Below are positions 7,379-62,600 of a stretch of 64,000 bases of DNA, in pieces. The stretch is taken from assembly GCA_965637545.1 (NCBI GenBank), contig OZ281494.1:11532001-11596000 (forward strand), read 5' to 3'. Position numbers and translations under genes: made by a program. Each line of letters opens with the position of its first letter. The first letter of the stretch is position 1. Below the pieces are notes generated by a model that was given only the letters and a program-made list of their open reading frames with translations, ran no database searches and was not told where the DNA came from. The stretch is from Phallusia mammillata (taxonomy: Eukaryota).

Positions 7379-7407
7379 ATTAAATTCCTAATTATGTTCT
7401 GTTGCAG
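7379..7407 (+). promoter_or_regulatory. ATTAAA poly(A)-signal variant directly followed by a strong 3' splice acceptor (RNF4-like/BIVM junction)
   Basis: ATTAAA at 7379-7384; ttatgttctgttgcAG with AG at 7406-7407; BIVM ATG at 7454. Confidence 0.45.
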
Positions 7408-7453
7408 GTTGTAAACTTTGATAGACTTTTAGGGTGTCACTTAATGAGTAGTC

Positions 7454-10400: not shown

Positions 10401-10751
10401 TTATGGCCTAATTTTTAAATTCTTGATTGTATTGGAGTAACTGCACCAAACAAATATACGACTGTAAGACAAAAAATGGAATTTGGACAGTTTCACTTGA
10501 GGATTAGAATTCGCCAATTGTAGGCAGTGTCATTAAGATCATGCATAATAATTATTTTACAACCCCTTTTCAGATGGGATGATATTCTTCAAGATCTTCA
10601 TATGGAAGGTCCAGAGTATTACAACATAAGGCATCCTGAAAAGGGTATTCAGCATCGACGCACCAAGAAAAAAGGTGGAAACTTGCACTGTATTATAGCA
10701 TTTAAAAAAGTAGCATTCAGAGAACAAGCAAAGCGCCAGAAGAAAGTGTGA
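7454..10751 (+). CDS. BIVM: Basic immunoglobulin-like variable motif-containing protein, 481 aa, 6 exons
   Basis: Exons 7454-8094, 8861-9041, 9108-9261, 9368-9507, 9583-9734, 10574-10751 join in phase (1446 nt). Diagnostic blocks [85 protein letters not shown]. Confidence 0.95.
9890..10369. mobile_element. hAT (Buster-type) MITE, 480 bp, in BIVM intron 5
   Basis: TSD GTTTAAAA at 9882-9889 and 10370-10377. TIR CAGGGGTGTCAAAC / GTTTGACATACCTG. Subterminal GCGGCCC repeats. Confidence 0.9.
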
Positions 10752-31800: not shown

Positions 31801-34800
31801 TTTCTTAAACAAAGAATAGAAAAGAGTAATAATCACACTTTTTATAAGGACCTCAAAACATTTTTGTATGTAGTGCACATCAAAACCACTGCTTTAACAA
31901 TGGCATATATTAGTATTTTTCATAAAAAAATCATCATGATAATTCTACAATTATTTGTGTTGTGCCTTACCGCTCTGTTAACAAGCACATAGTCTCCGTT
32001 GGCAGTCCGTTGTACAAGTCGTCCGTTGTGGGGATCTCCCCTACCCATTGGGGTTCGGTTCATGTCTCGCGGCTTTTGCGGTGAAGTGTGACTTGGTGGA
32101 CCTGGCGTATTGCTCCTAAACCAGGTCGGATGATTGGAAGGTTGTGCCTGGTGGAAAATAATTTGTTAAAAATATACAACCTATTTTGTGTTCAGAAATC
32201 AGTAAAGTGAACCATAGGCATTAAAAGTAAACCTTCGCTTTTCTGTTCTGTTTAGCACAAGTCATTCGGCACATTATAGTTTAAAAATGTTTATTCACCA
32301 CAAATTTTGATATCCTTCCTGACCTGATTAAAATAAGCAAAATTGAAATGATTTGTTTGCAGTTTAATTGCGAGGTGTACTTTCATTAAACTTTATAATT
32401 AGGGTCAAAAGTAACGCAGTCACAGCACAACTATTGTACAAGCTACCTGTTTTCTACAGAATGATACACACAACTGCTTTCAGATTGGCCTTTGCCACCT
32501 AAAATATCAATCTCTAACATGCAACACCAATTTTAGATAGACTAATACCTAATCTAAAATAATAATAAATCTTGCGTAAGTTTCTGTTCAAGCTAGGCTT
32601 ATAGCTTTTTGTTTACAAGCCGTTTTGATTATCATCAGTGGTGTGTTGTCTTTGATCAATACAAGTCACACACGGTTTAAATGCCTGTTCCCAGACGATC
32701 AAGTTGCACGCGCAAAACAAAAGGTCAAATGTCATCACAAATGTGGTCGCGTCACAGAAACTGCGCTTTATATCGTTTTACATTTGTGCCACCGTTTGAA
32801 ATATACCCAATGTTAACCGAGGCAGTCATTTTTGGACAACAACCTAGATTTCACTTGAAAATGTTTGGGTGCTGAGGTTAAATGCAGCTTTGATACCAAC
32901 AAAATCGTACCTTATGACCTTTCTTGTCGTCTGGCCCTTCGGTGTCGCTGTTAAGCAGATTACGCAAACGTTCTTCAATAGTCAGGTTTCCAGGATTTTT
33001 CTGCAAAATAGAAGAGAATATAAAAAACAATTGTAGATGTGCCTTGTTTCATGTCTGAATTCAGGCCTAGACCCATAAAGTATATTGTCTTAAATAAATA
33101 CCAATATTTCAGTCAACCACTGAATCAAATCGACAGACGGGTCTCAAACAACGAAACTTTACAGAATGTACGGCTGTGCGCAACAAATAACACTTTGTGG
33201 TCAGGAACAGTTTTGAAAAGAAAGCGAAATTGTGACGCATTTTATGGTAGAGATGAATTCATTCCCATTTGGTCCCAATTTTACTTTTACTTTAGAGTCT
33301 ATAGGTAGATATTTATCCGTTTTTTTCTAGTTAACTGCTGCATTTTGAACTAAAAAATCTTGAACCAAACATCTAAACATAAAATTGTGACTTGCAAACC
33401 GCAACAGTCAAGCATCACGATTTTCTCAATCAATCACCTCTTCCTAAACACACCTGCTTTGGTAGTATCAGTATTATCCGGTTGTAAAACCTGATGTGCT
33501 CTGACTCATCAAGAGATAGTAATACTACATCAGCTTAAGTACCGGATTTAGTTTGACTTTTGGACACACAGCAACTGGAGTGGACGCTAATATGGCAAAT
33601 ACGTGTTGAATGCTGCTGAATGCTTACAATTTGCTAATTTCTTATGACCGTCAACGTCTAAAAGTTCAATAAAATTCCTATATTTAAACATGTGGAATAA
33701 CTTTTGCACATAGAAAACGTTGATCATACCTAAACAACACCATCTCTTCAATTCTAGGGCCCGTGTAAAACTTTCGTAAAATCTAAACTGTCGGTGTATC
33801 TTAACTTAAAGTCTGTCTACAAGGCTGCAACCTTTCAAGTTTGCTATATCGAATAATATCCCTTCTTAACAAATGAACTATCAGCCCAAAACTTTATGCA
33901 CAGTAACTTTGTCTCATCATGCAACTGCGTTTGTCGGAACGATTCTGGTAAAAGGCAACTGTTGGGCTTGGCGAAACTTAAGTGGCCAATTACCTATAAC
34001 AAATGCTTGGAATGTCTCAGATGATTTTCTCTATTGTTATCGGCAGCTATGAAGCGGCAATTAAAATGATTGCTATTGTGACACAACAAGGATCGGATTG
34101 TTTCGAAACAATAGGTGTTCGTTCGGCATTCACGTGTGTAGGTGCAAAATAAAGGGGCCGCGTAATGGCACTTATTTAGTTTACAAATGACCAATAGGTC
34201 GCTGTTTGTTTTAATTTGTTTCCATCGCAAAAGGAACGGCTAATAAGCGATTTACTCTTTTTGCTTTAACTCATAACATTCAACCATCAATGGCAAACTA
34301 ATTCTTTTCCTTGAAAAGCATGCTTTTTTAAGACAATTCGTCCTCTTGAATGTTGTAACTTTTGTAATCAAAGTATAAAGTTTTTCAGGCTTATGCCCAG
34401 GGCGCTTCCAAATATAAAAACTGGACATTTTTTGTCATGTCTGTGATTGGCGAAGCCCTTTAGTATTTTGGATCAGGGGTCGGCAACCTTTTTTACACTG
34501 TGGACCGGTTTGAAACTGAAATTTTTATCTAAATAACACCACAATTTTTAGCACTGAAAACTAATTACGGTTATTACAACTTTGATTCAATTTAAACCTT
34601 GAGCAAGTTTTATGCGGCCCAGTAACGAACCTCTCACGGACCTGCACTGGGCCGTGAACCGGTTGTTGTCGACCACTGTTTTAGATCATGCGGCTAATTT
34701 GGCTAAAAAACTGTTTCTATACCTGGTGAGTCTGTGGCGCCACCTGGTGGTTGACAGCATGGCCGTTGACTTGGTTGGGGCGTGGGGCATGTTGGCTGAG

Positions 34801-35773
34801 CTTCGCTTCTGAAGACGGAGAGGTTGACTGGAAAGCTTTTTCGCGAATAGCCTGAGATAATCCAAATATATGACGTCTACCATCGGGTGTTCGAGTCGGA
34901 TTCGCCCGCCCTGGTTCCTGTTCTGCCACGCCCTGAAATATGAATGACGTCATGTATCTATTGCGGTGTTGATTAGGCTTCAATTACGTAAGGTCTAAGC
35001 GTGGTATGCCCACACAATAAACCGTACACTTTTAAGCCCATCATTTTGTACAAGGTGAATTTTGCACCTTGCTACAATAGGAATGTACTGTACGATGACA
35101 AAGACGACCATACCCGAACCAAACCAAAACGCTTTTTAATGCATTGTAATGGTCACACAAAACTGAAACAATGCTTCATTTGCCGATTTAAATTAAAAGT
35201 ATTGATCGAAATTTCACAATTTATACTTATAGCCCTGATGTTGTTTAACCGTTTTGCAAACTCGGATAAGAGGTTGTGTATACTTTAAAGTGGAAACAGT
35301 TTTTTTTACCGATTAATTTTGTCCGAATTAACTGAAGCGTTTGCGACGATACGCGAAGTCGCACCGTATGTTTTTGACATCACGTAAGTTTTGTGGCTAT
35401 AGCTAAACAATGGGATTATTGAAACAGGATAGCGGTGCTGCACTACGGTCTTAGTTTTGAGGGTTTCATAGTTGCCTCAGACGTTGTCTGCAAACGAATT
35501 ATCAATATTTTGTGGACTATACACAGTAAAACTATAGTGGACTTGATGTTGACCGAATTTTCGTAAATATTACTAATTCGGGCCGAAACCGAAACTTCAC
35601 CAACCGAAACTTCAGGGTATCACTATAGTAAAAACGTCTTAAAAACCTTGACAAAACGTTGTAATTACAAGGAGTGTTTTAGCACACAACGGTTGGTAAT
35701 GATCTTCGTATACCAGCACATAAACAACATGGTGCCCATAATAACTAATTGGGCGTTTTATTACAGAACCCAT
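19870..35773 (-). CDS. Uncharacterised protein, ~869 aa: long disordered region, short coiled coil and C-terminal SAM domain
   Basis: In-phase exons: 35773-35714 (candidate first exon, weak), 34932-34723, 33000-32911, 32147-31971, 31723-31583, 30729-29727, 29579-29452, 23864-23665, 22210-22055, 21361-21223, 20621-20460, 20013-19870 (2610 nt). Motifs: DGRRHIFGLSQAIREK; REIRSVNKRFTRLEAHVVTLARSLAQLSSELR; KLAKFFGDQPP. SAM domain: LHLFLKQLGYEKYIKNFECERIGMMELPYMDEKRLHDIGIPLGPRLRILKEA. Confidence 0.85.
20985..21117. mobile_element. Degraded hAT-like MITE fragment
   Basis: TTCGGG subterminal repeats; right end TTTACAACTCTA (TAGAGTTG on the minus strand). A related TAGAGTTG-headed, TTCGGG-rich piece lies at 23504-~23600. 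No matching TSD. Confidence 0.35.
23318..23445 (-). mobile_element. Possible degenerate tRNA-derived SINE
   Basis: Minus strand: weak A-box-like TGGCACAAACGTAG (23436-23423), B-box GTTCGAATCC (23379-23370), then a (GAGTT)n tail (23335-23318). No cloverleaf could be folded by eye. Confidence 0.35.
25503..25650. repeat. Dispersed repeat copy 1 carrying twin TGACGTCA palindromes
   Basis: TGACGTCA at 25545-25552 and 25565-25572. Flanks (AGAAAAATA, GTCATCGAAA, CAACTT) are shared with the copy at ~27280-27420. Confidence 0.5.
26673..27165 (+). repeat. Tandem repeat, ~157-158 bp unit, about 3 copies
   Basis: TCTTGACCAAAACGTGGGAACA recurs at 26821, 26979 and 27136. Whole units are near-identical (GGGGTCAAAATTCACATGGACCATCTTTAGACCAATA in each). 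The first copy is more diverged. Confidence 0.95.
26673..27260 (+). mobile_element. Non-autonomous Helentron/DINE-like rolling-circle element (putative)
   Basis: Internal tandem array, then an A-rich (GAAAAAA)n tract at ~27170-27205, then a 9-bp-stem hairpin GTCCCCTTC-AGG-GAAGGGGAC (27226-27246) and ATAACTAATAAT. This order matches Helentron-associated elements. The 5' end is undefined. Confidence 0.5.
27280..27420. repeat. Dispersed repeat copy 2 carrying twin TGACGTCA palindromes
   Basis: TGACGTCA at 27313-27320 and 27333-27340, with the same 20-bp spacing and similar flanks as 25503-25650. Confidence 0.5.
30831..31363. mobile_element. hAT (Buster-type) MITE, 533 bp, intronic
   Basis: Perfect 15-bp TIR CAGGGGTGTGCAACC / GGTTGCACACCCCTG. 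TSD GTATAGTG at 30823-30830 and 31364-31371. GGCCC subterminal motifs. Confidence 0.92.
34474..34678. mobile_element. Short hAT (Buster-type) MITE, 205 bp, intronic
   Basis: Ends CAGGGGTCGGCAACC / GTTGTCGACCACTG. Flanks TTTTGGAT (34466-34473) and TTTTAGAT (34679-34686) differ by one base. Confidence 0.75.
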
Positions 35774-42542: not shown

Positions 42543-45500
42543 ATGGCAGATAATTCTGATAATGCAGTGATGCAAAATACCATCAGTACCATGACTACTG
42601 CTTCTAACATACAAATTCCTGAATCTACATCTGCCAAGAGAATGTTTCAGCAACTAATTGCGGGCGGTGGTGCAGGTAAACGGAATGCTTTTAGTTGTCT
42701 GTGTTGTTTAAAGTTACAATGTTATGCCTTAAACCAACGTATTGGTTTTCAATATCTTATGTGTTTGATCAAAGAAATATTTGTCAGCAAACAATTGACA
42801 AAATATACATTTGTGAAGTGTCCATCCATCACTTATTCATGGTAGTTATTTGTGAGCAGTATAAATAATTAAAATACAATTATCAGTTTTTACATGTATA
42901 CATGTATATTTATAAATATGGCAGTAAATATTTTAGCACTTAATGGTGCATCGATTTTATGTATCTAGAATCATTTGCTGTATAATGTAATCCCATTTTT
43001 TATAACAAGTGTAATTTGTAACTTGTACTATAATGGCAGTTCAATGTGTATATTAGACCAAACAGGATTGGGGTAAGATACCCTGATATTTGCTTATCCA
43101 TTGAGCAAAACAGCAAGATGTCAGAAGAGAGCCAATTTTTTGGTCGACCTGAAACTGATTCCATTCAAACCTTTTCATCCATAACCCCCCCGCACACATA
43201 TTGATAAATTATGTTAAGCTGTAGCATACCAAATAAAAAAATCCTTTTGCATTTCTATCACACTGCACTAATATGTATTGAATTTAAAACCCTGTCTGTT
43301 GCATTCAAGTTAAAGCATTTTTTGAAAATAACAGAATTGAGGCCAACTGACTGTTTGCTTTTATGTTATATAATCAAAAATGACTTATTTTGCACATTGT
43401 GTTTAACCAGGTTTGCCATTAGTTTATGATAATAAAGTAAAGCTTATGCTTGATTTTGGGTTGCACCCAGTTTTATTAGCGAGTCACGCAATGTAACCAC
43501 ATACTTACTTGCCATGTTTACCTTCCAAAGAGAAATAATCTCTAGGTTTGACTTGGTTCAAGTGAATGAATTGAACCAAATCCTTATTTTGTACCCGGTC
43601 CTTATTGTCTTGATTTTTCTCTCCCGTCCCATCACTTTAATGTCATATTTAGATCCTCGCTTTCACCAGAATAAATTAATTTTGCCTTTTTACAGGACTT
43701 GTTGAAATCTGCCTCATGCACCCACTTGATGTTGTGAAAACAAGGTACTCAATAGTTTCATCAATTAAATTCTGTTTATATTTCTAACTAACTTTGTGTT
43801 TAGATTCCAGCTCCAGGGCAATGCACCTGGATCAGTTCATTACCGTTCTGTAGCCCACTGTTTTACAACCATGTACCGCGCTGAAGGGTGGGTGGACAAA
43901 TGTTATGTCATGCTGTTTTTATTTTTCTGTAATTGTTTTTAAAATTACAGTTTCCTTTCATTTTACAAGGGAATTCTGCCTCCGATTTTGGCTGAAACTC
44001 CAAAGAGGGCAGTGAAGGTAAATTGTGCCAAACCACACAAAATTGGTTTGTAAAAGTAAACATTATGGTTTGTTTGCATTTCATTAAGCACAGTTGTGTT
44101 TTGTTAAGTAATCCCACTGTACTTGACTTTTGCCCCATTGCTTTTCAGTTTTTTTGCTTTGAAAGATACCAAGACCTGTTTAGTATGGGAGGACCCAAAA
44201 CCCCGTTGGTAAGTAATTAAATCGTAAAAACAATGTCAAACCTCTGCGCAACACCTCGTTTCTATAGCCTGAAGGGAAGTTATAGTTATTGCTGTCAATT
44301 CTCAAACCGCATGTCTGTGAATGCTAGCATCTGCGGCTTTTACCAGAATTCTAATCTAACCGGTTACCTGATTAAATTCCAAAGCACAAGAGAACGTTCT
44401 TGAACATACGCTGTGTTCAGTTCAGTCTATTGCCTTTCCTTTGATTAAGCAGAAAAACTCCAACAATCGAGAAATTGAGGAAAGAAGCGGGTTTCCGCAT
44501 TTAAGCTTATGCCTTTGAAAAAAGAATAATGCTTTCGATAAACAGTAGCATTTAATTGTGGGATCTATACCTGGCTAAAAAGTCTTAAATTGTTATGTTA
44601 ATTTTGCCATTGTAAGGACATCAAAATAATTAAGGTTAACGTAAGTCAATTCGTCGAGTTGTTTTTTTGTGCAAAACCGCAGCGCGAACTTAAATTGAAA
44701 CATGAATAACTGTTGCACAAGATTAGAAGAAACACGGACCAGAGTACTGACTAGTACTAAGTCTCTTAAACATATGGATTTGCAAATACGTTTATTTAAA
44801 AGTTATAAGCCGCTTTTTGTAAACCTATTTGAACTAGATCTAAAAATACGCGAATCTAATACTCTTCGATTTAAATCATCACGCCTGCCAAACATGTGAC
44901 GTCATTGCCCTGGCGCGGCCGGTAAACACTTGGGAATGACAGCAGTTTACACAAATCGCGGCGCTACCGAATCAACACAAGGCCCAATCTTCACATCGAT
45001 TCCCACTGTTGTTTGCAAAAGCGCTTAGTCTCCATTCATCGTCGATAAACGATGGCCCGTCTTACGTCCACCTAGAGCGGACCGCGAGCACCCCGTGCCT
45101 GACGGATTACGCTTAATTCGAGCTGAGATGCCTTTTGTTCGCCGATCGGTGGTGAGTTTTAAATGTTTTGCGTGGAATTCGTGAGATAACATTCGGCAAA
45201 CACGTCCAGTTTGCCGTGGAATTCTTGAAATAATTCAAGGAATTCGCTATGAGGAAAGTACGCCTTGAACAAAAGCTTCCAAATTACCTTATCACGTCTG
45301 ACTAACAGAGTTTTCACGTGACCGCCGACCGAACAATAAGGTTCTTCACAGCTTCGTCCCATTACATACGCTAGGTCGCGTGGATAAATACATGTAGATG
45401 CATCTCAAATGTAGTTAGTTTCATGGTAGGTAAGTTTTAAAGGATTATTTGAACATTTCCATCACTCTAATTTCTCGAAGCTAAGGTTTGGTGCGACCCC

Positions 45501-48500
45501 CAGCGGTAATCCCGATAAACATCGATGTACTTTGAACTTTAGCCACAAACAGCCTAGCCGCACAAAACGGTGTCATGTCAGCACAAGTTATTCAACATCT
45601 GTACTTTGTATTTATGTTCTGGTATGCAAACGTTAAGTTTTCGAATTTGAAATTGGTCCCTTACATATATGTTTGGAATATAGTTTTCCCCCAAAGAACA
45701 GTAATATGGTTCCTATCCTACATGTTTTATGCGTAGATCTACTCTCTAGCTGGCCTTTGTTCAGGTCTCACCGAGGGAATCGTCTGCAACCCGTTCGAGA
45801 GGGTCAAAGTTCAGCTGCAATCGGAAAGAGATGTCAAGCTAAGGGATGTAAGTGACCAACCCAGCCACTAAACAAAACTTTTTGACCATTTAAATAAAGC
45901 CTAATAGTCTTTTTGAAGAACGCACCACTTTTCAGCGCTAACATTTGCTACGAGTTCAAATATACAGCATAATGAAAGGCGGTACATGATTTTGCCAAAT
46001 GATATTGGCTGTATTTGTTGTTCCATGGTACATGAATGAAAAAAATATTGTTTTTTTTTGTAAACCCGAACATTTGTCACGATGGTAAGCTATGCGAAGA
46101 ACTTTTCACTAAAATCTCACGTTGTTGTTTTGAAACTTTTTACCGGGGTGCAAGACGAAGACATTAAGATCTATCATCTCGCATCCCCCTTTTGCGGATT
46201 CCGGACACACCTAGTTCCTAATGTTCGCGTTAACGTTCTGAAAATCTTCACAACAATGCACACCGCTCGCACCGACTCTCAACTGTTTTCAATACGGACC
46301 TTTTCATGTATTGTGTCACCCTTTTTCCTTAACCCCAAGCGCAACCCCTATAACCCTACAAATGTGGGCCTAATGAGCGCCGGCATGGGTGGCCTGGGGC
46401 TGCAGAGGTCCCAGGTCGGTCGGCACACAGCCTTTGCTCTTCGCAACTCGAACAAACCGACATATTTTACATAATTGTCGCCTTTGTATCTGTGACATCA
46501 CAATGAGAGATTGGGGGTAAACCCGGGCGCTGGGCGCGATCTAACAATGCCCTGGGTCCCGAAATACGCTTTTCGGCCCCGGGGTTGTCACGCAATAGTG
46601 GGTGAGTCAAAGGCCCCGGGAGCCCAGGTAGAGAGTCAATAAGCTGGTTTGGTTCCTAATGACAGCGCGCGGGCAAAAGCGATCACAACTGGCAAGTCGT
46701 CGTCATGGAAGGTTGCCAATGATTGGACGAGCGCTGCGCTGCCGAACGACACTGTGTTTTTGCTTTTTTCGGATTTTAGAAGGTCATCAGAAACTTAATA
46801 GTCAATCCTAAGCGATGATCCGACTTGTTTTTGTACTCCCAGTTTATTTGGTTTGCGTCATCTGTTATTACGACTCTTTTCACCCTTTATCTCCTTTGCC
46901 AAGATTGAAGATGACGACAAGCAAAATAATGTCATCATTAATTAAAATTCTTACCTCCCTGTAGCATTTACATGATGTTTTTACGCTTTTACGGGCATGA
47001 ATCAAAATTCCTTTCTTACGCTTTGTGAAATTGTTCGTTCTTCTGGAAAATGTAATGTTGATATTTTGGCCATTTTGTAACAAATGCTGATGTGTTTGCA
47101 CCAAAATCCATTTGTTCTTTATCGGACAAATATCTGTAATGCCAACAGTAAGAATATTTTTTTGTTGCAGCAACAATCGACATTTTCCAAAGCTCGTCAA
47201 ATCATCAGATCTGATGGTTATGGCATGATGGGGATTAACCGGGGTCTAACGGCAACCCTGGGACGACACGGTGTGTGGAACATGGTCTACTTCGGTGTCT
47301 TCCATTCTGCCAAGAAATACATTCCTGAAACTGAGGTTAGGACAAACCTTTTTTATGAATTATATTGATCGCCTTAAGACGAACTATTGACCTAACTTTA
47401 CACATTTGGAAAATATTGTTTTTTTCTGGTACTGTATTTGTTTACCTTTTGAAAGTATTTGTCCGTGTTAAAAATTAATACTGATTTAACAAACTAAATC
47501 CGGTTTCTAATGTCACGAAACATTATACTTTTTTGCATTGTTTCCTAATTTCGTTTGAGTTGTTTATTCCAGTTTATACGTCTGTGGGAGCGTTAGTCGC
47601 ATAGTTCACATATATTTTGTCCCCGCCCGTCACAAAAAACAAGCAACATCGCAAAGTCGATGATTTTTCAACGGGTCACCACCATCCCAGAATCGCACAA
47701 AAGCCTACGACATTCCACATCCGAATTCACTCTATTTCTGCGCCCGCCAAAGTCAAACAACGCCCTTGCTAATCTAATTGGTCGTCCCGTGTTACCATAG
47801 CAAAGCCACTAAAAGCCGTCGGCCCACACCTGTGTCGTTAACTCCGGTGTTTCAAAGCCAGATCGTGAATTGTGCTCTATGTTATGTCAGCCCTGCTTAT
47901 GACACTTGTTTGTTCATGGGTCACTTAGGGCCCCCGGTCCACCTGCTTCGGCCCCACGTGGTCCACCCCGGCCAACGTAAACACGTAACCCGTTTAGCGA
48001 TCATGAAAGGCGTCGTTCCGCTGTGTCCGGTATCTGAACGTGACTTGGGTTTCAACGGGTTTAAAGTGTTTCAAATTCGCCGGGAATGTCGCGAAATGTA
48101 CTGCGAAATAGCAGTGGGTTGAAACGAGGTAAAGTCAAAAAGACGTTGTGGTCAACGAATTTTTGCCCTATACGAGTCATTTTTATTGGGAACATGCTTT
48201 TCCAAACGGTTTATTGACAGATAAACTAAAAAATACAGTTAGAGGTCAGTGATGGACCGCTTTCAAAATGCAACTATAGTTTTAAAATTTGTTTTGACAA
48301 TAATCTTAGAGTTAGAATTATGACTTAAGGATATATTTGTATGACGTCATGCACAATTTTAATTTCTCTCGAGGTCAGCGATGGACGTCTTTCTTCTCTT
48401 TTTTACCTTTACAGAAAACGTTAATTATGTCTCTTTCTAACGCTGCTCTCTTTTTTTGTGTTTATATTTTCAGCATAGCTCGCTCTACTTTTTGTCGCTT

Positions 48501-51500
48501 GTCACGCGACGTGGTTCGTACTTAAAACGCTTTCGCTCGTTTTGCCGCCAACAATGGGTCCATGGGTGCGCGAGTGTTTGAACAAGGCCCCGCGCCCCCA
48601 CACCCCCCATCCCGGACCCCGAAACCGTCTCATTTCCTTTAGCAAAACCCGAATCCCCGACGCTGACAAATTAGCCCCGCATTTTTAGACTCGAGCGTAG
48701 AGCGTGATTTGAACATTGTGTCCACGGGACAATGCGAATTGTATGTACAACTTTTGTGCGTGTTTTCTGCCTTTCCGCAAACCTGGACATGTATAGATTT
48801 ATTCACGCCTAATAACCTACACAATCCAATGCTTGCTTTACTACTGAACCGTCGCTCTTGATTACTCCCCCTACAGAAGTCGTACGGGATTTGATTCGCA
48901 TGGTGGAAGTTAATTTAGCCTGGCACTCCCTATAGTCAGAATGTAACGCTCAATGCACGCAAACAGACCGTCGGCCGGTGGGAAAATGCTCGGCTTATTA
49001 AGAACACCACCAGGGGTCTGTTGTTTCTACGCCAAAGTCAACATTCGATGAAAAGCCTGATTTCCAAAACAAATTGCCGCCGTGCACGCAAGGTCCTGCG
49101 AACCTCGGTGTGCTTAATTTCGATGAAACGCAGTTCTTAAGAATGTTATTGATCGCCTTTTGGAAAATTGAGTGGGGTAGCAATGTTAAAAAGTGGTCGG
49201 TACTAAGGAATTCAGTGCCGTTCGTTTCATCAGATTTTAATACTTGTCTATGCTGTCACTTAACAAAGGCGCTGTGACGAGCAAACACAGTGTTTTGAAT
49301 TGCTTTTGGGTTAAAATTAAAGAACTCGCCATTTACGGGTGGCGTAGGCGTTAAGACTTGCCCCCGGAAATTAGTAAACGCTGTGGAATTTCTCATTCCG
49401 GCAAATTTCTGCGATGCGTCTTGACAAGGTTCGTGTAATTCTTCCGGCAAAAAAACAAAACAAATGGACAATTCAAACTTTTACATTTAATAGGCTGGAT
49501 CGTGCAACAGACCTCACTTATATTAAAATGCGTTTTTTTCGCGATAATAAAGCCAAAAAGCAAATGGGAAAGAAACAAGAACGGGTTTATAGATTTCAGA
49601 AAACTCTTTTGGTAATGATTTTTAACTGGTCATCTTTTGGAAAATTAAACATTTACCATTTTTTTCTGCTAACGGTGATTTTAAAAAGGTATCCTTATCC
49701 TCTGAATAAAGTATATCATTAGGCTGCAAATGCGCTGGTCAAAAATCGCGGATGGACAGCGCGTTCTCATTACTTTAAAACAGCATTCTTAAACAGACGG
49801 AAAAATTCGACACAATGTCACGGCGTTATGCTTATGACCCGCGCGCAAATGCGTGATGATGTAGCTTTGCCTCGATGCAAGCAAGCGCTTTTGAAAGACC
49901 CAAGCGGGCATTCACGCCTCGCAAACTGAATCTGAGAGTTTACGCCATGTGCAAAGCGTTGTCGTTTTGTGAATGGACTCAAGTACTTCGCCTCTTTGGT
50001 TTTTGTGAATGAAGTTGACCACGCTCGCTTGAGAAACGTCTCACGCTTTTTGCATCCGTGACACTACGAGATGGTTGCCCGCTTCGCCGCCTAACACTCA
50101 GATTTTGACACTTTGCTATACTTTTGCTACGTCGTGATCTTGTATTGGTGGATAAAGCGTGAAATAAACGTTTCGCGCTGTGATAATAATAACATGACTG
50201 TTATGCTTTCTAAAGAGTAACCAGCAGCTTGACATTGAATGGCCAAAATGTGGTTCAGGCTTTAAATACTGGATTGGTATTTCGAGTCACCTCAAAAAAA
50301 GTTCTTGAAAGAGCTGAATATTATTATGAAATTAATGATGAATGTGTTAAATTATTCCAAAGTGTCACACTTACCTACCTGAAATTTAAAAATTTGTAAC
50401 CAAATTTGTTCAAACGTAATTTAGTCCTAAAGTGTAGCCTAGTTTAATTTTTTGCAGATCAATATGACACTTGTGATATCCAGGCAAACCCCACGTAGCG
50501 CTTTTAAAAATCGTGTTCAATGTATTTTTGGCTTGCAGTCGAACTTCGCGAAGGTTTCCTACCGACTGAGCTTAGGTCTGGCCGCGGGCACCTTGGCGTC
50601 CATTATTAACATTCCATATGATGTCGCGAAAAGTCGAATCCAAGGTCCACAACCTGTTCCGGGCCAGATCAAGTATTACGGTGCACACAAAGCGATCTAC
50701 ACAATTTTCAAAGAGGAAGGGTAAGTATTAGCTGCACTACTGCAATTTTGTATTACAACAGAAACTAAATCATTTTTTTGAAAGGTTTCTGGCTTTGTAC
50801 AAAGGCTTGGTCCCGAAGTTGATGCGTCTTGGGCCAAGTAAGTGATTTATCCTCATCATAGGCGTAGAGTTTTTGAAAATACTGGGGGTGCGCCGTTTGA
50901 TCTCCCAAAAAAAATGCCTATACCATGTACAGTATCTGTACCCGTATGAGACCAAATAACGACACTTTTTACGTGCTTAAGCATGTAGCTTCTATCACAA
51001 TAATTTGCAAGCCACTTGGCGCAATTTCTTTGTGTTCGATTGGAACGTTTGCTGTGCGTCGGTGCGTCGATTTGCCAAGTCAGCCATTTTAGCAACGATT
51101 AAGTTTAAAGTAACGTGTTACGGCTGGAAATAAAAGTAAAGCAGTTCACGATTTAAATATAGCCGACTATGTATTGTTGACGCTTAAACTTAGGTCACCT
51201 TGGAACAAGTTTAAGCCGTTGCAGAGCTTTGCAAACGGACATTAAACTCGGTTTAGGAATAAATTTATTAAATATTTTTTTTTTTTTTTTTATTGCAGAG
51301 AGTTATTGCGACAAATAATACTAAAACGTTAGTCTATAAGTCATGTTTATGTTACATCAAAATGCTCATTTATTGCGAAACAATTACAATTGTTACGTTT
51401 CAACCGACAATGGCATGAATGCAAGCGCATTTGTTAAGCTGGAAACACGTTTTACCGAACCGACGTAACTTGAACAAAGATGCGATTTTGACTTTATACA

Positions 51501-51678
51501 AAGGTTAAGGCCGGGGTTGCGCGGCACCCCCGCATCCCCGTACTCTACGCCAGTGATCCTCATATATACTTTTTATTTACATGACAAGAAACCAACTGTG
51601 TTTATTTTTGCAGGCGGGGCAATTATGATGATGGTTTATGAGACGATATCCGAGTTCCTTGCCGAAAAGTTTCCTTGA
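42543..51678 (+). CDS. SLC25A21: Mitochondrial 2-oxodicarboxylate (oxoadipate/oxoglutarate) carrier, 322 aa, 10 exons
   Basis: Exons 42543-42675, 43696-43744, 43804-43887, 43951-44017, 44149-44208, 45737-45847, 47171-47335, 50539-50720, 50785-50837, 51614-51678 join in phase (969 nt). Carrier signatures PLDVVKTR, PFERVKVQ, PYDVAKSR. ODC-specific YKGILPPILAETPKRAVKF, LGRHGVWNMVYFG, KSRIQGPQP, LYKGLVPKLMRLGP. Confidence 0.96.
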
Positions 51679-54600
51679 AGGTTGAAACTGTATCTTCCCC
51701 AGCAATCCGAATAATGTAGCAATGACATCGCTATGCAGCCTAATATTACCAAGTTTATGCCTCACATCGTTAACGTGCTGTTTTTTTGCCGTGAGCATTT
51801 CAATCAAAATTTTAGTATTTTTATCCCTGTTTGATTTCAGATTGCTAGCTACACTGATACGCTTCATTTTTTTTGGACACATCATTTCGTATTTTTCTTC
51901 GTGTTTGTGCATGGTCAATGGTACAGTTTTACCGTTTTCTTACGAACTTAATTTATTGACTTACTTCTGTAATTTGAAGTTTTAGTCCGCTGAACCTAGT
52001 GCAATCGTAATCAGCGCCAATCAAAGTTTCGTTCACACGTTGAATTTTTAATATGAATATTTAATTTATTTTTGATACTAATCTGGGTTTTAACTTCTAA
52101 CCAAAAATTCATGTAAATTGTGTTTTAAATTGTTTTAATTTGTTATGCATATTATTAAATTTATTACGTATACTTTTTTCACTTTACTTTCGCACCGTTC
52201 TAAATTCTTGGCCTACCAAGGTTTTGAACAGACGCACATGTACATAGGGTATGCTCGAATTAAAAAGAACCTAACTTAGAATCGGAAACAGTTTACGTTC
52301 AAACATCTGGTGTAGTTGTTAACGTATATCCTCATTCCTTTTTGGGTGATTGCATTTTTTTTCTGTTGTGCAACAAAATTCTCTTTCGCACAAATTACTG
52401 TTGTATACGCACTCAAACCACCTAAAAGTCAGGCTTTTGCCAATGTGTGGAAATCACAGTGGTGAACATTATGTTATAGACCAAATTAGCTCATTTCAAA
52501 AATGTGGCAACAGATAAGTTTTGCTTAGCTGTTGGTATTTTACAATTTTCCTAAATGCCACTGCATTTTTATTTGGCTTGATCTATAAGCGCTTTGCTTG
52601 GCCAAGTATCTTGTGTGCGTCATATATATATATATATTTTTTTTTTGAAGAAATTTTTAGGGAAATGAAAATCGAAACATATATGCTATTTATTTAATTG
52701 ATCATTTTTTGTGCTCTGTACCCGTTGTCTGTTCTTGGGCCAGATTTTTCGAGGCAACATATTTTTTTTAAATCGTTAGTTGCCCAATCGTTGTGCAGAA
52801 TTGCGTTTTTGTGTGTAATTGTGTGTATGGTGCTATTATCCCTTTTTTGGCTAAAAAATATTTCTATATCTTGTTGATCATGTATGTGTAAATTGAAAGA
52901 TCAAAATTTATTACTGGTTGCGCTTTTACTCGTCACGTGATTGTTGTCGAATATAAAAAATGTTTAGTCTTATCAAAGTTTATATTATATGCTGTGTTTA
53001 GTATTATCAAAGTTTATATTACATGTTCTTATATTATAAATTCAGTTTTGTATGAAATCGAAAAATATTTAGGCAAAAAAACAGTAAAGAACACTATTTT
53101 GCAAAAAAAGTTAATGCCACCGAAACGACCCCCACTCCCCTTTTTCCTCAAAAAGACTTGTTCTAAATTGCCCACACCTGAGCACCGCTTGCTTTTCACT
53201 CATCTTTCACCATTTCGACATCAGCTGTCGCAATAAATTACAGAAGCTCTGCTTTTTCCTGAGACCGGCGATGATTCATTTCGCCAAATCAGCAGAGAAA
53301 ACAACTGCACAGCCGCAGAGTCGTAAACTACTTGCTCGCCGAGGGCCGCAACGGTTTCTTATTAAAAACCTACGCTCTGCGATTGGCAGCTCCGGAAATG
53401 TAGGGGTCAGATGTCAAGCGTTCGGTAAAAGACGATGCTGCTCCCGTACAACCGCGTATTATCATCTCAACTGTCAGCGCGAGCTTGGCAAAAGCAGTTT
53501 ATGACGTTGGAAACTTTTGAGATTCATTTAGGCGTGCTGCTGTGGTGGTTGTATGGAGGAAAGGACCGTTTCAACAGGGCTATGACGTACAATACAAAAA
53601 GGCCGATTTTTTGTTGCGCCGCACTTTAAAAAAAAGCCATACATTTTGAGGTATGCCTAAATTGACATAGGGCTAAGTCCTGAAATGCAAAAAAAGGTTT
53701 GCTGCACCGCTCTTCGGAAAATGAGTTTTTTTTGAGATTCGTATCTTTTTACACCTTAACGTTGTTATATCAAAAGGATCTCTCTAAAATTTGGCGCTTA
53801 TGTTAATTTGAAAAATTATCTCGTAAAAAGCCATTCATTTTATGACTTGCAAAATTGACCTTAGATAAAAAAATCAAAATACATCAATCGTTGTGTGGAG
53901 CTCACCAAGCCTCGACCAATCACAACAAAGTCACGATAAGAGAGCCGATGATCCCTCATCAAAATACGCATTACCGGGGGTGACAATGGACGACATGCCT
54001 TTAGTTTCGTGCCTGAATCAGCGGTGGGAGGATTTACAATGCTCAGGCCATCTGCGGTTTATCTGTCGCAGGTAAACAAAACAGACGTCTCTCCTCACAG
54101 AGGTTCTTCATGCCGAAAAGAGTCAAGCACACAATGTCTGATTTTAATGGACCAATTTTTGGCAAATTCCAAGCTGAAAGCATAGCATAATGCCCTTTTA
54201 CACTAATATGTGTTTCTTAACTCTTTAGGTCCGTCAAAAGTTTTTTTTAAACAAATTGCGTATGTATCAGTTTTTAATCACCAAAACGAAAGCGTTTAAC
54301 CAGCTTTTTGACATGTTTATGGTTGTTTTGTAACCTACAAAAAATTTTCTCTTTTGACGGATGATAGTCTGCTCTAACAAAAAAGACCGTTGAAGTTATC
54401 AAATATTTTTTTTTTAATCTTTTGATTTTTTACAAGTTATCGCATGTTAAGTCACCAACTAACTATGATATAGGCCTAACTTGACTGCACCTGTATTACC
54501 ACCAGTCTTAAAATTTAATGGCCTTCCATGCGTATTTTTGAAAGAAGTAACATTCATACAAAATGCGCACAGTATAATTTTTCGCCACCATCTGTCAGAC

Positions 54601-55288
54601 AGAAAACGCAATTCCAAATGCCAGGATAACAAAAGTTCCATTTAAAATTAATTCATGGCGATTGAAGAGTGCACCCAAAAATCACAAAACGATTTAAAAA
54701 GACACATATAAGGCAACAAATAAACGGCAACGACGGGTAAAACAAAAAACGGGCGAAAACAAGTTAGTATAGGCTAACTACAAGGCGATATATATGTATA
54801 TTGGCATATTTGTTAGTGCAATTGGCGAAAGAAAAAAAAACAATACAAAAGAAAGGTAAAAATAGCAACAAACAATTCATGTTGTTATACGTTTGCTTGT
54901 GGTTTGTGTTTTACATATTGTGCAAATCGCAAATTAATTTTATCTGAGACGAGTAAAAGGCAGTTAGACGACATGGCTATTTTCATGTATGAGGTTCTAC
55001 TATTCTACAGGCAGCGAAAACCAATATTGTTTTCTGCATATTTGTAACTATTTTTTGTCGACCTCAACCATATTGAAGCCAGATATCATGGCCAAAATAT
55101 TGTATAACTTTTCAAACAATTGACATTTACAGCGCCGCATTTTTAAAGCCATTCTTTGATATGATTGTTGATTTAAAAAAATATGGCCGGTTACCAGCGG
55201 TTGAGCATTCGTTCGTCACGCATGCGTGAGTACACCGCGGCGAGCATCTGTTGCGAAACAGCAGCCTCCAAGTCAAGAAATTCAAGCT

Positions 55289-58200
55289 TTATGAGGAGGC
55301 ACTTGCATGTGTTTGCCTTGCATCTGAACCAGACTTATTGGTTTCCGAAGAAATCTTTGAATCTGCAGAAACACAGATACGAAACATTACTCACAAGGTA
55401 CCGCTAAAACTTACAGTGTGTTTGTTACAAGAACGAAGTAATTGGCTTATTGCTTACAAGCATACTACGCCTACTTTGAATGCCTTTTTGTGCCTGTTTT
55501 CAACCCTTCAGCCCAGGGACTTCAAAGGCAAGCACGTGCTCACGCGGCAAGCTTTGTCGGCTATTTGTGTGCAATTGCGATCAAGCGAATCAAAACTTAA
55601 ACCTACCGAGCACCCAAAATTGACTGCGCTTGCCATTCTACTGGATATAAATGCGCATGTTGTGTCACGCAATCAAATACCTTGAAAAAATGTGACCTTA
55701 TCAGTAACCGTTATGCTAGGCTTACAAAAATTAATAGTAGTTCAAGGATTTTTAAGCCTAAATTATGCAATGGCCACAAACTTAGACCAATGCAACCCAA
55801 CCTCGTGTTTGTAGTTAAACTTAGTGATTTATTATTACAATTTATTTAAACTACAAAGTTGTTCATCCACGTTGCGACTTACCTGCTTGAGAAGTATGCG
55901 AATGCTTCGGAAAGCCGTTTTGTTGCGCGCCATTTTGTTGCTGGTGTTGGTGTTGCGGGTGACTTTGAACGTGCTGTACGTGTGACATCATAGATTGGTC
56001 TATGCCGTTCATTGCAGCTGTTGGTGGTGGTAGGGGAACGTGCTGTTGTTGCCAAGCTGGGTGGCCGTACGGTGACATGTATGTGGGCGATGGGTAGGCG
56101 CTTACTGGATGCTGCATCATTGGCGCGCTTGTGGCAACGAATGGTTGATTGGAAGGTGCCGCATACACGGAGTTTGACGGCTGATTGGGTGTAGGGCGGT
56201 TCTAAAATTCAGAGAATACTGATTAGTGATGTATGTGGCTTCGTAAACTTTAAACACTTGAAACGGATTTAGTTTAAATTATGTTTTACAAACCAGAGAA
56301 CAAGCATGTGGCTTTGAGGTAATGGTGTTACTAAAACTCAAATATGTTTATACAAACTTTACAATCCCACAATTCTAAATTGCAAAACATAATACAATCC
56401 TACATTACAAAAGATTTTACAATCCTAAATTGCAAAAAAATAAGAAGTACAGAATATAATGTGGTTTTAGTCGTGTGCTAAACGCTCAACTTTATTCCTT
56501 ACCTCTTCGCTGGAAGTGTGAAGTGCAGTGACTTCCCTCGCTTGGGCAGAGTCCTTGTCCACTCCATTTAGCGTTACGGACGTGACTTGCGTTGGCGGTG
56601 GGACACCGTATGCTGTCACATTGTTCCATTCTTCGATCTTTGGTATCATAGCTGGCATGGTTACTGGCACCAGCTGGTGATGTTGATAGTTACCGGCGCT
56701 ACTCGTCACGTGACTGCCTTCGATCATGTGATTGGCATGGCTGCTTGCTGCAAAATGATTTGTTGTTGTTACATTGTGAAATATTGCAATTGGCTAATAT
56801 GATGCAAAACAATTCAGTAAAATGAAGAACAGTTTTTTGGCGTTGGTTGGTTTAGTCTTAAAACGCTGACCGTTAGGTGGCGTACGTTTAGGCTGTATGT
56901 TGTAATAGGCGTTGCTTGCTCGGTTTGAATCACGTGAAAAATTACTTGTTTGAGAGGAATTAATCCAAAATTTAGTTATTCCGTTATTTCTAGTTGTCAA
57001 TGTTTTGGCTTTTGTAGTGTGTGTAAATATAGTAGAATTAAGAACGGTTGACCTGCGGGAAAAATAGAGCCGACTTTCTTAAAAAACACTCTTTGGGGGA
57101 TTTAAAGAACATAATCTCAGGTGATGTTTGTAGTTGGGACCATGACTAAATAGTGCGATGTCAAAATTTTCCCACGTTGTCGCACCTTCACTATTCACGG
57201 GCAAGACGAGGCTTGACGAGAGGCGAGCGGGCGACGCACACTGCCATGGCAGAACGGCCTTAAGAAAACTTTCACTCGCTTCGTTAAGGTTCGGAACGTT
57301 TGCATGCATCTACTACACGTGCGTGTCTTGAGCATGAATCCGAGCAGATAGTTTTCCGGCCCTGGGCGTCAGGCTCTTGCGTTACGCCCGCTGACGGCTT
57401 TCCAAGTGGCCATAGACACGTGTACATGTAGCGATCCCTTGCCACCCCTGTCCGTAGCGCTTCTATGCATAATGCATGACGTGTATGTTGCGTAACGGCG
57501 TTCGCCTAAGCCGGCGAGATTTGAGCGAAAGCTCGGGATGCGAACATCAGCTGGCGTTAAAAACAAAATGGCGATGTCTCGCTTGGCTTAAGCCGCGTGC
57601 GCACAAGGTCGCCCCGCGCCTGTGCATCTCATGTTTTAACATTCAATTAGGTGAATCTGACTGCAGCGAGCCGCAACAATATGCGGACGTCGGGCCGAAT
57701 TAGTCATGCCTATTTGCTGGACAGTAGCCCTTTTCACGTTTAGGAGGTGGACTTGCATACATTTCCCCGCTTTCGCCCGCCATTGATGCGACTCGGTGCA
57801 TGCACAATTCGTATTGTCTCTCACTTTACGGCCAGTGAAAATCCTAGCACCCTCCACTCTGAAGTACGACCCGAACTCGAGGACTGGGAAACGGGATATT
57901 TTTCAGGTGCACGATGGTGTTGAGTTGCTGTTTGCGAGTATTTCGTGCCCAGAAAGGTCGACAACAAGTTTTGTGGGTGACGCCTACGCTCAGTGATAAA
58001 TTTACCTTTGAATTATCTAACAAAATAATAGATAACCTACCCGATAATCTCCGTACAAACATATAAGCTTGCATTCTCAACGCCTATTTCGACTAAAGAA
58101 AACGTAAAGACCTTTTACAAATTTTTGTTTTGTAGCAAGATTATTGTGATATCGAAAAATTTTTTGAAAGTTGGAATTTGTGTATTTGCGGGAAAATATC

Positions 58201-59671
58201 AGCTTTTTGAATTTTTTGAGACGAATGAATTGTCATTTTGCAAATATTGGCGTTTAACCAATATCGCGTGTGTTTCAAGCAGGGGTCGTTGGTGGGGCTG
58301 TGTCGGGCAGCTTCCCTGGGAAAGTCACGCTATTCGCATTTGGGCGTGACGGAAACCTGCTGCGGGACGACTTGTAAGAAAAGTTGGTCGGGCGGTATGC
58401 GCGTCCAGTTACATATTGGGACCTAAAAACTGTAGAAACTTCTGACCCGATTCGGCGCAGACAAGGCAAAAATAGCAACGTGCCCTCGCAGATGTTATCC
58501 CTAGCTCCCGTCGATGTTATATCGCTAATTGAGCGGGAGCAGGCCTTAGCTGCGCACTTACGACCATCGTTGTTGATACAAGAACCTCCTGATGTTCATC
58601 TTGCTAATAACCCATTCACTTATACTGTTTATTATGCAGTGCTGGACATTTTGTCTTTCGGCACGTTTCTATTTCACTGATGCTTGGGACAGTTTAAACT
58701 GACGTAAAAAGGGAAGTGTCTGAATTTTGTGCCTCTCTCTATACAGTTTGTTTATTTGTGCGGATAAAATAACGAGCTTGGTAATTTGATACCACACAAA
58801 GGCAGCTTTGGAAATTCGCACGTCGATTTACCAAATTGACGTAATTTATTTTAAACAAAGCGTAAAAAGTTGCTTTTTCATTCTAAAGTTTTAAGTGGCG
58901 ACGAAAATTATGTGTTTTGTTCTGGCGTTCTAGCATACAGACGTTTTTATTGGAAAAGTAAATATAATTTAGTCCTTAAACTAATTTCAAACAAAGAATA
59001 TTTACCTTGGCTGTGTGGTTGGTCAAATCTTGAAAATCCGAGTATTTCGGTCACAGAATGCGAGTAGAGCGGATGTCCCATCGGGTTTCGCAGACTTGGG
59101 GTTCCGTTGCCAGGTATTGTGGTTTTCGGTACAGACGGTACCATGTAGTGATGGTTATAAATCGGAGAGCTGTACATGCCTGGCCTCATCCCACCCGACT
59201 GTGTTGAAGTGGTGTGCTCCATAGTTGCGGCTGCTGGTACGTAGTTTGGGTTTAAAGGGTTATTCGGGTGCAGCACGTTGCCGATCTTGTTGCGCAGAAT
59301 ACGGCTGATAGAGCTCACCGACGGCACGTTGTATTTATCGCATACAGCGTCACTCAGCAAACGATCTCGGATCTCCCAGGCAAAAATACCCGGATCCCGT
59401 ACCTTGTATTCCTTGATTGCCTGCACCACACCGGGTGTAGTGACTCTAGGTTTGCTACCGCCTATAGCGCCAGGTAGTATAGATCCAGTCTCGTTGTAGC
59501 GGGCTAGTATCTTGCTTACGCATCCGTGAGACACGCGAAGCTGACGGCTGATGTCGCACGGTCGAATTCCGAGTTGGGCGAGCTCGATGATTCTCAACCG
59601 TATAGCGTTTGGAAGGGGTCGCCCATTGACGAACACTCCGCCGAGCTGGTTCACTTCACCAAATGTTTGAT
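55289..59671 (-). CDS. Pax1/9: Paired-box transcription factor Pax1/9 (paired domain plus octapeptide, no homeodomain), ~435 aa; first exon not securely located
   Basis: Exons 59671-59006, 56747-56503, 56201-55883, 55362-55289 join in phase. Paired domain [80 protein letters not shown]...[11 protein letters not shown] is group I type. Octapeptide HSVTEILG. The paired exon starts in phase 1, implying an upstream ATG-G exon. Confidence 0.96.
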
Positions 59672-62600
59672 CTGCAACACAAGTCTGTTGTAAGAATATG
59701 ACAGATATGCGTTAATGCGAACAATATTAGCATCCTATATTTTTGACCAACGTATATTGTTAACATTTGTCATGGTATGCATTATAAGTGAAAACTATTA
59801 TTTAGTTTGATTTTCAAAAAATAAATAGGAATGAAACCAACAATTATTTGCTTTATACCCATAAAACGCTTGCAACTGTATTTAACATTGGATACACTGC
59901 ATACGCGCACATAAATACAAAATGGCGGAACCGCGAGGCACCTTATTGTAAAAGTCATATTTCGCAACCTTTTTTCACTTAGATTTTGTTTGGCACATCC
60001 TACACATAAAGCGTTTGGTTGGTAAATCAACCGCTATAGTAAAGCAGAGAATTCAAGTCTTTAAACAGTTTTTTTATCAACACTGGTAAAAACGCGTTAG
60101 CATGAGAATTTTACCAAAATACTAAAGATACACATATCTGTACAATACTGGTATCTTTGATGACACCATATCGCAAAGTTGCAACAGAAATGATTGCAAA
60201 AACTTCACCTAGCATTTCCTTCTGTTTGGGAGTAAGCTTGCTGATTGATAGACACTCGGGATGTTTGAAAGACGGCGATTCAAGGCCCATACTGGGGCGC
60301 AGACACGAAATCATGATTGAGCTTTTTAAGGCTACCGAGCTTTGGTCTAAGAACTGCGCACTAAGATTTTTTTCCACAACCTTTTCAAGATAATTAGGTG
60401 AATGCAAGTTTCACAAAAAACTCTATGCAGGAAAACAAATTAGTAGAAAATTTCAAAAAAAATCGAAGCACACTTTGCCTCAACTATAAATTAGCTTAAA
60501 AAAGCCATCTAAAAAAGGAATCACAAGAAAACTTTCTGGTGCGTTTTAGGCTTAAATATCTCGTGAAAACGCACATAAATTTCTTTCCCGAGCGGTTGTG
60601 CATTACAGAAATTTTAATCTTGTTTTACGGGGTGCAGAGATTTATTGCTTGCAAATATCGATCATAGCATCTTTTTACTGCAAAACAAACCCGCTGCCTC
60701 TCTTCCATGGCGGACGCGCGTTGTGTGCTTGTTGTGAAAACGGGTGGACACGCGAATGTCCACAAATTCACATCCACTACAAGCTGTCAAATGCGTTTGG
60801 CGCGACCACTACCTGCTTGAACGACAACTGCGACCGCCCATCGCTGTCAAGCGGGGTTTTGTTTGCTTCAATTGCTCGCCTTCCCGACTATTGATACCCT
60901 GCTTTTGTGCAAATCCATTTGACACCGTTTTGAAAACGCGCCGAGCACAATACGGACCGCCCTCCCCCCTGGTCGACTCATTTGAGCTTTTCCAAACAGG
61001 AGCCTTTGTGCCCGGGGATCGCGGTCTTCCAGCCCACCGGTGCTAAAATAATAAAATTCATCGGTGCTCGTCAGCCGAATTTCAGCCTAATCGGACAAAA
61101 ATCTTCGCCGAGATAAGCGTCGTCATCCATTTCGACCCCCCTGTCACTGCGGGATAAATCCCAATCGAAAGGTAGTTTTCGTTGCAGCCGCCGATTTCTC
61201 GGTGTTGAGCCGGGCGGAGGTAGGCAAAGAAAACATGGAGATAAATGTCCGTCGCTCGCATTTGACTGAAAAGTTTGCCCGCAGATTTGCGCAAGCCCCT
61301 TGAGCACGCAAAACTCTACAGTATGCATGAAGTGGCCAAAGCTAGTCACGCATAGGGACGTTAACTGTTGGCCTGGTTGAGACTTTTTAAAGTATTCGCA
61401 AGACTTTTCACTGGGTGGTAAAAAAGATTTACAATTTTAATAAATTTGCGCAAATTGTATATTTATATCTTTTGCATACAATTTCAATTTGTAGTTTGTG
61501 CACTGATAAATTTGTTCATACTTATTGGCCAATTGAATTAAAATGCTTTTTTAAAACTTTAAATTAAAAACCTATCACATTTGTTCAATCAAAGAAAGCT
61601 CTGTTTAGCTGTGGACTGAATGAAGCCTGTTTTAAACTGGATTAGCACCTTATCTGCGTTTCGATATTTTACATAGAATTGTAAATACAACAAAATTCCT
61701 CACGCCCAACGATGAAACGTGTGTGAGAAAACCAACAATATTTGATCGTTCAATCGAACCGGGATAAATGTTTATTCAGTCCTGGCTTGACGCTCGCTTA
61801 TTGAATTGAATTCAGGCGACAGACATGCAGGTATTACTAGATAAACACCCTCGATTGCCCTTTAGTAAACTCTGACTAAAGGTTTTGTCCATGCTCATGA
61901 CCACAATATGGTTACATTTTGAGCCAAGAAATAGTTTTTAAATCTGTTTTACCTGTTTAGTTTGTGTATTTGTTACTAGTTTGTATTTGTAAATATCTAA
62001 TATTATTAATTTTTGTAGGTTTAAGTTTTTGCTATAAATAAACATTATGCGATTATAGTTTAAGTTTGTTCCTTATGTTCAAGACCAAGCAAGCACTTAA
62101 AAATCGAAAATGACACATAGGACAAATATTCATTTGTACTGTCTTCAAACATTCAAATTTATGAAGGAAAATAAAATTGACCCGTGCATTAAGGTTTTAC
62201 TATTTTTTTAATGTTAAAACAAGAAAACAAACTTACTGTTCGAAGTAGGTGGCGACATCATAGACACCATTCCTGAGCTTTGTAGAGGCGGACTAAAAGT
62301 AACTGCTTGGCCCTGGGTTGGAGCGGTTTGCATATTAATCATTGGGACTTCTTTGCGCCTTATGCGCCACAAAAGATCAGCTATGTTGTTGGCCTAATAC
62401 TTCACGGTATATCGCAGTTCTTTTCGAAGTCACTTACGGTTATAGATGATCGCCAATAAATGCCTGCGTATAGGAAACAGCTTGTTACCAGACTACAGAA
62501 ATTCAATGGGCTGAGATGATTTATGAATAAAATTCCTTTTCAGCGACGGATTAATATTTCCCAGTGTTGTATTCTCCCAGCTCATTACGTTCTCTTTGGT

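Follow-up and report, generated by a model that had tools for sequence, protein, structure and literature searches.

Pax1/9 and SLC25A21 are a textbook case of a developmental gene standing beside an unrelated 'bystander' gene, the two being supposedly held together by shared regulatory DNA. A 64-kb stretch of the genome of the ascidian Phallusia mammillata (G000:C1:11532001-11596000 in a 240-Mb assembly, free of any N, and hereafter called the window) contains both genes and raises the question of what keeps them adjacent. Analysis of the window revealed that SLC25A21, the gene for the mitochondrial 2-oxodicarboxylate carrier (ODC), lies on the plus strand and converges tail-to-tail with Pax1/9 on the minus strand, with 3,610 bases between the two stop codons, and that these are the only members of the deuterostome pharyngeal gene cluster still found side by side, in the ancestral tail-to-tail order. 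The span from ATG to ATG (42543-62342) amounts to 19.8 kb and encloses both genes, their untranslated regions (UTRs) and all of their introns. An earlier reading of the same DNA (the original prediction) had proposed the convergent orientation, a distance of about 3.6 kb between the stop codons and the orthology of both genes to their PAX9 and SLC25A21 counterparts; all three proposals were borne out, the last by Pfam matches and by the best named relatives. The limits then assigned to the pair, 42543-59671, were correct at the carrier end, 42543 being the carrier ATG, and fell short at the other, where 59671 is the first base of Pax1/9 exon 2 and exon 1 had been missed.

Protein searches were run exon by exon, and spliced models were joined solely for frame and stop-codon count. 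The coding exons of the carrier (Table 1) are bounded throughout by GT..AG splice sites, including the exon 4 donor GT at 44018, and the reading frame ends with a TGA stop at 51676-51678. Matches to the Pfam family Mito_carr were obtained with single plus-strand exons, among them exons 7 and 8, and in alignment the exons of the window cover residues 23-287 of Xenopus ODC. When exon 8 (50539-50721) was compared with a representative protein library, the full-length matches that were looked up were all named mitochondrial 2-oxodicarboxylate carrier, while word-based searching with this exon yielded fragments that are annotated as 'solute carrier family 25 2-oxodicarboxylate transporter 21'. Family matches and nearest named relatives thus identify this gene as the SLC25A21 orthologue, whose predicted substrates are 2-oxoadipate and 2-oxoglutarate. 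A search of the whole genome with Xenopus ODC gave 48-64% identity for the exons of the window and 26-30% for every other locus, and the window therefore holds the sole ODC-grade locus of the genome. Elsewhere on the same contig (G000:C1:25903046-25910366, minus strand), two intronless full-length mitochondrial carrier open reading frames (ORFs), which encode 310 and 335 aa and show 26-27% identity to ODC, lie at a distance of about 6 kb and probably represent a retained tandem pair of other SLC25 members.

The minus-strand gene is the Pax1/9 orthologue, as indicated by its paired domain, its octapeptide and its nearest named relatives. Its reading frame begins with ATG at 62342 and is closed by a TAA stop at 55289-55291, in exon 5. 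The paired domain is complete, since the ORF at 58947-59654 (minus strand) matches positions 5-125 of the 125-position Pfam PAX profile PF00292 with an E-value of 2.9e-64; it is followed by the octapeptide HSVTEILG, and both are encoded by exon 2. No match to the homeodomain family PF00046 was found within the 64-kb window, and the closest one on the contig is 231 kb off. The gene-named relatives of this ORF are nearly all Pax-1 or Pax-9 proteins of vertebrates, amphioxus and molluscs, and the few remaining matches are labelled merely 'paired domain-containing', 'hypothetical' or 'unnamed'. Exon 1 was predicted 2.6 kb beyond exon 2 and is kept in three other ascidian loci (L001, L002 and L003). 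Outside the window, a second paired-box match (G000:C2:23548837-23554122) is 72% identical at the DNA level to a portion of the Pax1/9 paired box; lying 5 kb from a homeobox match, it belongs to another Pax gene, one with a homeodomain.

The structure of the 3' ends of both genes is supported by RNA contigs from public sequencing runs, which were aligned to positions 50750-56749 of the window. The joint between carrier exons 9 and 10 (50837>51614, GT..AG) was found in contigs of three runs, and the loose end of one contig contains the last bases of exon 8. On the minus strand, contigs of three to four runs contain the joints 56503>56201 and 55883>55362. Being spliced, these contigs represent transcripts. 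The second of the minus-strand joints reveals a fifth Pax1/9 exon and hence the stop codon given above; a stop at 55863-55865, at the end of the open frame of exon 4, which would have made the gap 4.2 kb, is thereby ruled out. Both genes are accordingly transcribed and spliced, with three junctions and long 3' UTRs supported by RNA. The carrier 3' UTR may extend to about 53241, as a small RNA contig covers 53075-53241 and an AATAAA signal occurs at 53232; on the opposite side, an ATTAAA is located at 54519, past the lowest Pax-side RNA contig. As little as about 1.3-1.6 kb between the two genes may therefore be untranscribed. Among the RNA contigs aligned to this region, no overlapping transcripts of the carrier and Pax1/9 were seen.

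The pair belongs to a cluster of the order nkx2.1-nkx2.2-pax1/9-slc25A21-mipol1-foxA, described in deuterostomes by Simakov et al. 2015 (PMC4729200), who reported a bilaterian age for the slc25A21-pax1/9 pairing and placed regulatory elements of pax1/9 in the introns of slc25A21. In mouse, a cassette inserted in Slc25a21 reduces Pax9 expression (Maguire et al. 2014, PMC3958370). The description of the pair as a known ancient microsynteny, credited to Pax enhancers in the carrier introns, was thus well founded (PMC4729200, and PMC3958370 for mouse). It had also been proposed that the other members of the cluster are missing from the window, and this is the case for the FoxA-like and NK2-type genes. 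The only gene of the genome matching both Forkhead and HNF_C, which is FoxA-like, is found at 15.708 Mb of the same contig, C1, 4.1 Mb from the pair. The NK2-type homeodomain motif WFQNHRYK occurs genome-wide only at C2:23950781 and C7:21159711, and the two genes that contain it would, on the strength of this motif alone, be nkx2.1 and nkx2.2. No homeobox was detected within 230 kb of the window; neither nkx2.1 nor nkx2.2 adjoins Pax1/9, and foxA is not found beyond SLC25A21. One of the two NK2-type homeoboxes is situated about 400 kb further along C2 from the second paired-box match mentioned above.

At the spot taken by mipol1 in vertebrates, the window contains a multi-exon gene (19870-35773, minus strand) arranged head-to-head with the carrier. 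It encodes a C-terminal SAM domain (19873-20013, SAM_1 E-value 1.5e-6) and includes a coiled-coil-like exon (21178-21450), while its large Ser/Pro-rich exon (29722-30729) gave no Pfam match.

Retention of the pair with the rest of the cluster dispersed has already been published for two other ascidians and is therefore not new (Blanchoud et al. 2018, Sci Rep 8:5518, PMC5882950). In Ciona robusta, Pax1/9 and the carrier alone are close to each other (~3 kb), and FoxA maps to the chromosome that bears them; in Botrylloides leachii the Pax1/9-carrier pairing is all that is left of the cluster; and in Botryllus schlosseri and Molgula oculata no clustering was found (PMC5882950). A literature search found no paper on the pair in Phallusia.

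In order to trace the pair further, the window was compared with ascidian sequences in databases. The closest relative found is an ascidian present in JGI samples, whose Pax exon 2 and carrier exon 8 have 80% and 81% identity, respectively, to those of the window. In this species the pair has been retained within a single 31.6-kb contig, where the last of carrier exons 6-10 stops at about 11.3 kb and is followed by Pax exon 4, in the reverse direction, at 20.1-20.3 kb; the contig also includes Pax exon 2, and the genes are about 8.8 kb apart. It is not Ciona, since its homologue of the receptor gene described below is 51% identical to the Ciona protein. Three ascidian assemblies from ENA are more distant, with Pax exon 2 74-77% and the receptor 46-53% identical to those of the window. 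In ERZ21736675, Pax1/9 is located mid-way on an 803-kb contig, and the 14.7 kb downstream of it contain no carrier exon; a complete carrier occupies the middle of another contig, of 574 kb, and the 9.5 kb downstream of it lack any Pax exon. The pair is thus split if both contigs come from one animal, as is assumed here. No carrier exon was found within 18 kb downstream of Pax1/9 in ERZ22157276 or within 13.6 kb downstream in ERZ25067590. The split carrier (L009, ERZ21736675, ctg14079l, 4180-10682) occupies 6.5 kb versus 9.1 kb in Phallusia, and its intron 6 measures 224 bp versus 1.3 kb; such compactness fits a loss of intronic content after separation, short of proof. Synteny is thus kept in the JGI ascidian and, according to the literature, in C. 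robusta and B. leachii, is split in ERZ21736675, and was not seen within 13.6-18 kb in the two other assemblies. Absence of the linkage from close relatives had been named in advance as evidence that would refute the original prediction, and this outcome was observed in part, in the three more distant assemblies.

The window also contains an intronless rhodopsin-type receptor gene (14873-16174, plus strand; 7tm_1 E-value 1.7e-55), whose product is 98% identical to a Phallusia mammillata protein listed in UniProt as 'Type-1 angiotensin II receptor A' and 56%, 51% and 50% identical to its best relatives in Ciona, Clavelina and Styela, respectively. The genome is accordingly that of a phlebobranch tunicate, P. 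mammillata or a very close relative. Paralogues or orthologues of this receptor share contigs with Pax1/9 in the three ENA ascidian assemblies, and with the carrier in one of them, and a wider receptor-Pax1/9 neighbourhood may be conserved.

Non-coding conservation was evaluated by tiling the 40-64 kb part of the window with nhmmer against all fetched ascidian loci, of which L004, L005 and L002 probably represent one species. The strongest match is a block of about 390 bp in intron 6 of the carrier, which recurs in the same intron of one other ascidian that has retained the pair (Table 1). Its invariant cores are 9-14 bases long and include TGACATCACAATGA, TGTCACGCAATAG and GGGTGAGTCAA; the alignment of the two sequences contains indels of 7, 18, 5, 7 and 14 bases, and the block is considered non-coding because these are not multiples of three. 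It is present as a single copy in the genome, belongs to no Rfam family and is not a tRNA, which rules it out as a repeat, a tRNA or a known RNA. RNAalifold draws helices on the block alignment, whose two sequences give no real test of covariation. The three ENA ascidian loci were searched for the block near Pax1/9 and in the split carrier, using a profile and near-exact cores, with nothing convincing found, and when JGI metagenome contigs were screened for a 22-base core of the block, the only hits were two contigs of the JGI ascidian already mentioned. In the 5' half of the carrier, which was compared only with one species that has lost the linkage, no conserved non-coding block was detected. 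Between the 3' ends there is one weak 65-bp match, which is marginal because the three loci sharing it probably come from one species. Further blocks were found in introns 1 and 2 of Pax1/9, while a match at 62211-62460, which had been a candidate non-coding block, corresponds to Pax1/9 exon 1 and its 5' flank.

Table 1. Coordinates of the two genes, their 3' UTRs and the conserved non-coding stretches in the window (L numbers denote fetched ascidian loci)
Feature	Position in the window	Strand	Details
SLC25A21 (mitochondrial 2-oxodicarboxylate carrier) orthologue, coding part	42543..51678	+	10 exons, ~322 aa
Carrier coding exons 1-5	42543-42675, 43696-43744, 43804-43887, 43951-44017, 44149-44208	+	
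Carrier coding exons 6-10	45737-45847, 47171-47335, 50539-50720, 50785-50837, 51614-51678	+	
Carrier 3' UTR	51679..52979	+	at least 1.3 kb; spliced RNA contig of 2,342 nt extends from 51614 to 52979
Pax1/9 orthologue, coding part	55289..62342	-	5 exons, ~469 aa
Pax1/9 coding exons 1-5	62342-62237, 59671-59006, 56747-56503, 56201-55883, 55362-55289	-	
Probable Pax1/9 3' UTR	54567..55288	-	spliced RNA contig to 55129; small contigs 54891-55061 and 54567-54732 as separate pieces
Conserved block in carrier intron 6	46371..46763 (~390 bp)		nhmmer E 3e-24 to the same intron of another ascidian (L004 6065-6498)
Weak 65-bp stretch between the 3' ends	53380..53444		nhmmer E ~2e-3; collinear in L004, L005 and L002; marginal
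Conserved block in Pax1/9 intron 2	57296..57494		nhmmer E 1.8e-5 to the same intron in L002
Conserved block in Pax1/9 intron 1	60855..61078		nhmmer E 2.9e-9 to L002 5516-5732
Weaker block in Pax1/9 intron 1	60197..60322		L001 and L003 (more distant ascidians), E 1e-3 to 2.5e-4

These data may be explained by a regulatory tie, in which part of the cis-regulatory DNA of Pax1/9 would lie inside or beside the carrier and hold the pair together. The carrier would then be the 'bystander gene' of a genomic regulatory block and Pax1/9 its target, with the intron 6 block as the top candidate element and those in Pax1/9 introns 1 and 2 as further candidates. This bystander model is plausible and fits both the literature and the intron 6 block; the identities and arrangement of the genes are secure, and the mechanism is not. 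We consider the chances that a regulatory tie keeps the pair together to be evenly balanced. The more specific proposal, that the intron 6 block is a gill-slit enhancer of Pax1/9 that ties SLC25A21 to it in certain ascidians and has disappeared or changed place in those with a split pair, is tentative and on balance doubtful. The miniature regulatory block of about 20 kb envisaged in the original prediction is only suggestive, with one strong conserved block, in intron 6, to point to it. Several observations weigh against a regulatory tie. The block, a candidate enhancer, could equally serve the carrier. The only other species in which it was found is the closest relative sampled, and relatedness therefore confounds its co-occurrence with the linkage. 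In the three more distant assemblies no carrier was detected within 13.6-18 kb downstream of Pax1/9, and one of them has the genes split across contigs; Pax1/9 can therefore do without this neighbour, and the linkage is not obligatory. Finally, a gap of 3.6 kb is a small target for breakpoints, which makes neutral persistence a real alternative.

If the pair is such a neutral leftover, its tiny convergent 3' gap would have been broken only rarely and no regulatory constraint would be involved. This explanation would account for the loss, or undetectability, of the linkage in the three ENA assemblies, for the lack of clustering in Botryllus schlosseri and Molgula oculata (PMC5882950), and for the intergenic DNA having just one marginal match; however, it has to be reconciled with retention of the pair in four ascidian lineages with heavily rearranged genomes (those of the window and the JGI species and, by literature, C. 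robusta and B. leachii), with a gap that is not always tiny, being about 8.8 kb in the JGI species, and with a conserved non-coding block inside the carrier. Neutral persistence is possible, if somewhat less than probable. An explanation centred on the carrier holds that the intron 6 block serves that gene itself, whether as an enhancer, as an alternative promoter or exon, or as an RNA not yet annotated, and is silent on Pax1/9. The block does sit within the carrier transcription unit, and helices can be drawn by RNAalifold, on two sequences only, but the lack of an Rfam family or tRNA match and the indel lengths count against this explanation, and the carrier of the split-pair species, with its 224-bp intron, evidently works without the block. 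The cores also resemble clustered transcription-factor sites, in our own reading of the sequence. We regard this explanation as unlikely. The constraint might instead reside in the shared 3' region, where the two genes would be coupled through convergent transcription, through termination or through a chromatin boundary that they share. The approach of their long 3' UTRs to within about 1.3-1.6 kb speaks for such a constraint, yet no overlapping transcripts were seen, the gap in the JGI species is over twice as long as in Phallusia (~8.8 kb against 3.6 kb) and there is almost no sequence conservation in it. We regard interdependence at the 3' ends as highly improbable.

Two further ORFs were noticed near the beginning of the window. 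The first (6517-7035, plus strand) encodes a C-terminal RING finger (zf-RING_2, E-value 6e-9) preceded by two short V/I-x-D-L-T stretches that resemble SUMO-interaction motifs, and presumably the protein is similar to RNF4. The next ORF (7454-8167) encodes an acidic protein with no Pfam match.

The vertebrate locus is too large for full dissection, while in Phallusia the pair occupies 19.8 kb and has a handful of conserved non-coding blocks that are testable in ascidian embryos and in juveniles, whose pharyngeal gill primordia express Pax1/9, and ascidians with a split pair provide a natural experiment on the purpose of the linkage. Should the intron 6 block be a Pax1/9 enhancer, the locus would represent a complete target-plus-bystander block of about 20 kb that is dissectable base by base with electroporated reporters. 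The locus is a clean and compact example that confirms published work in another species and opens no new question; new here are the exon models backed by RNA, the exact gap of 3,610 bases, the candidate element in intron 6, and the assemblies in which the pair is split or unlinked.

The Phallusia locus resembles those of Ciona robusta and Botrylloides leachii in that Pax1/9 and the carrier have stayed near each other and the rest of the cluster is dispersed. It is similar to the former also in the location of FoxA, which in C. robusta is far away on the same chromosome, the FoxA-like gene of Phallusia being 4.1 Mb away on contig C1. With the cluster described by Simakov et al. it shares the central pax1/9-slc25A21 pair and the idea of the carrier as a bystander holding pax1/9 elements, but differs from it in that the NK2-type and FoxA-like genes are not adjacent; unlike in vertebrates, where mipol1 is found in this place, the head-to-head neighbour of the carrier has a SAM domain. 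The same two genes are paired in mouse, with Pax9 likewise 3' of the carrier, although the functional support for the linkage comes from mouse, the Phallusia locus being known from sequence and RNA contigs. The mammalian Slc25a21/Pax9 locus extends over hundreds of kilobases, against 19.8 kb for the whole pair in Phallusia.

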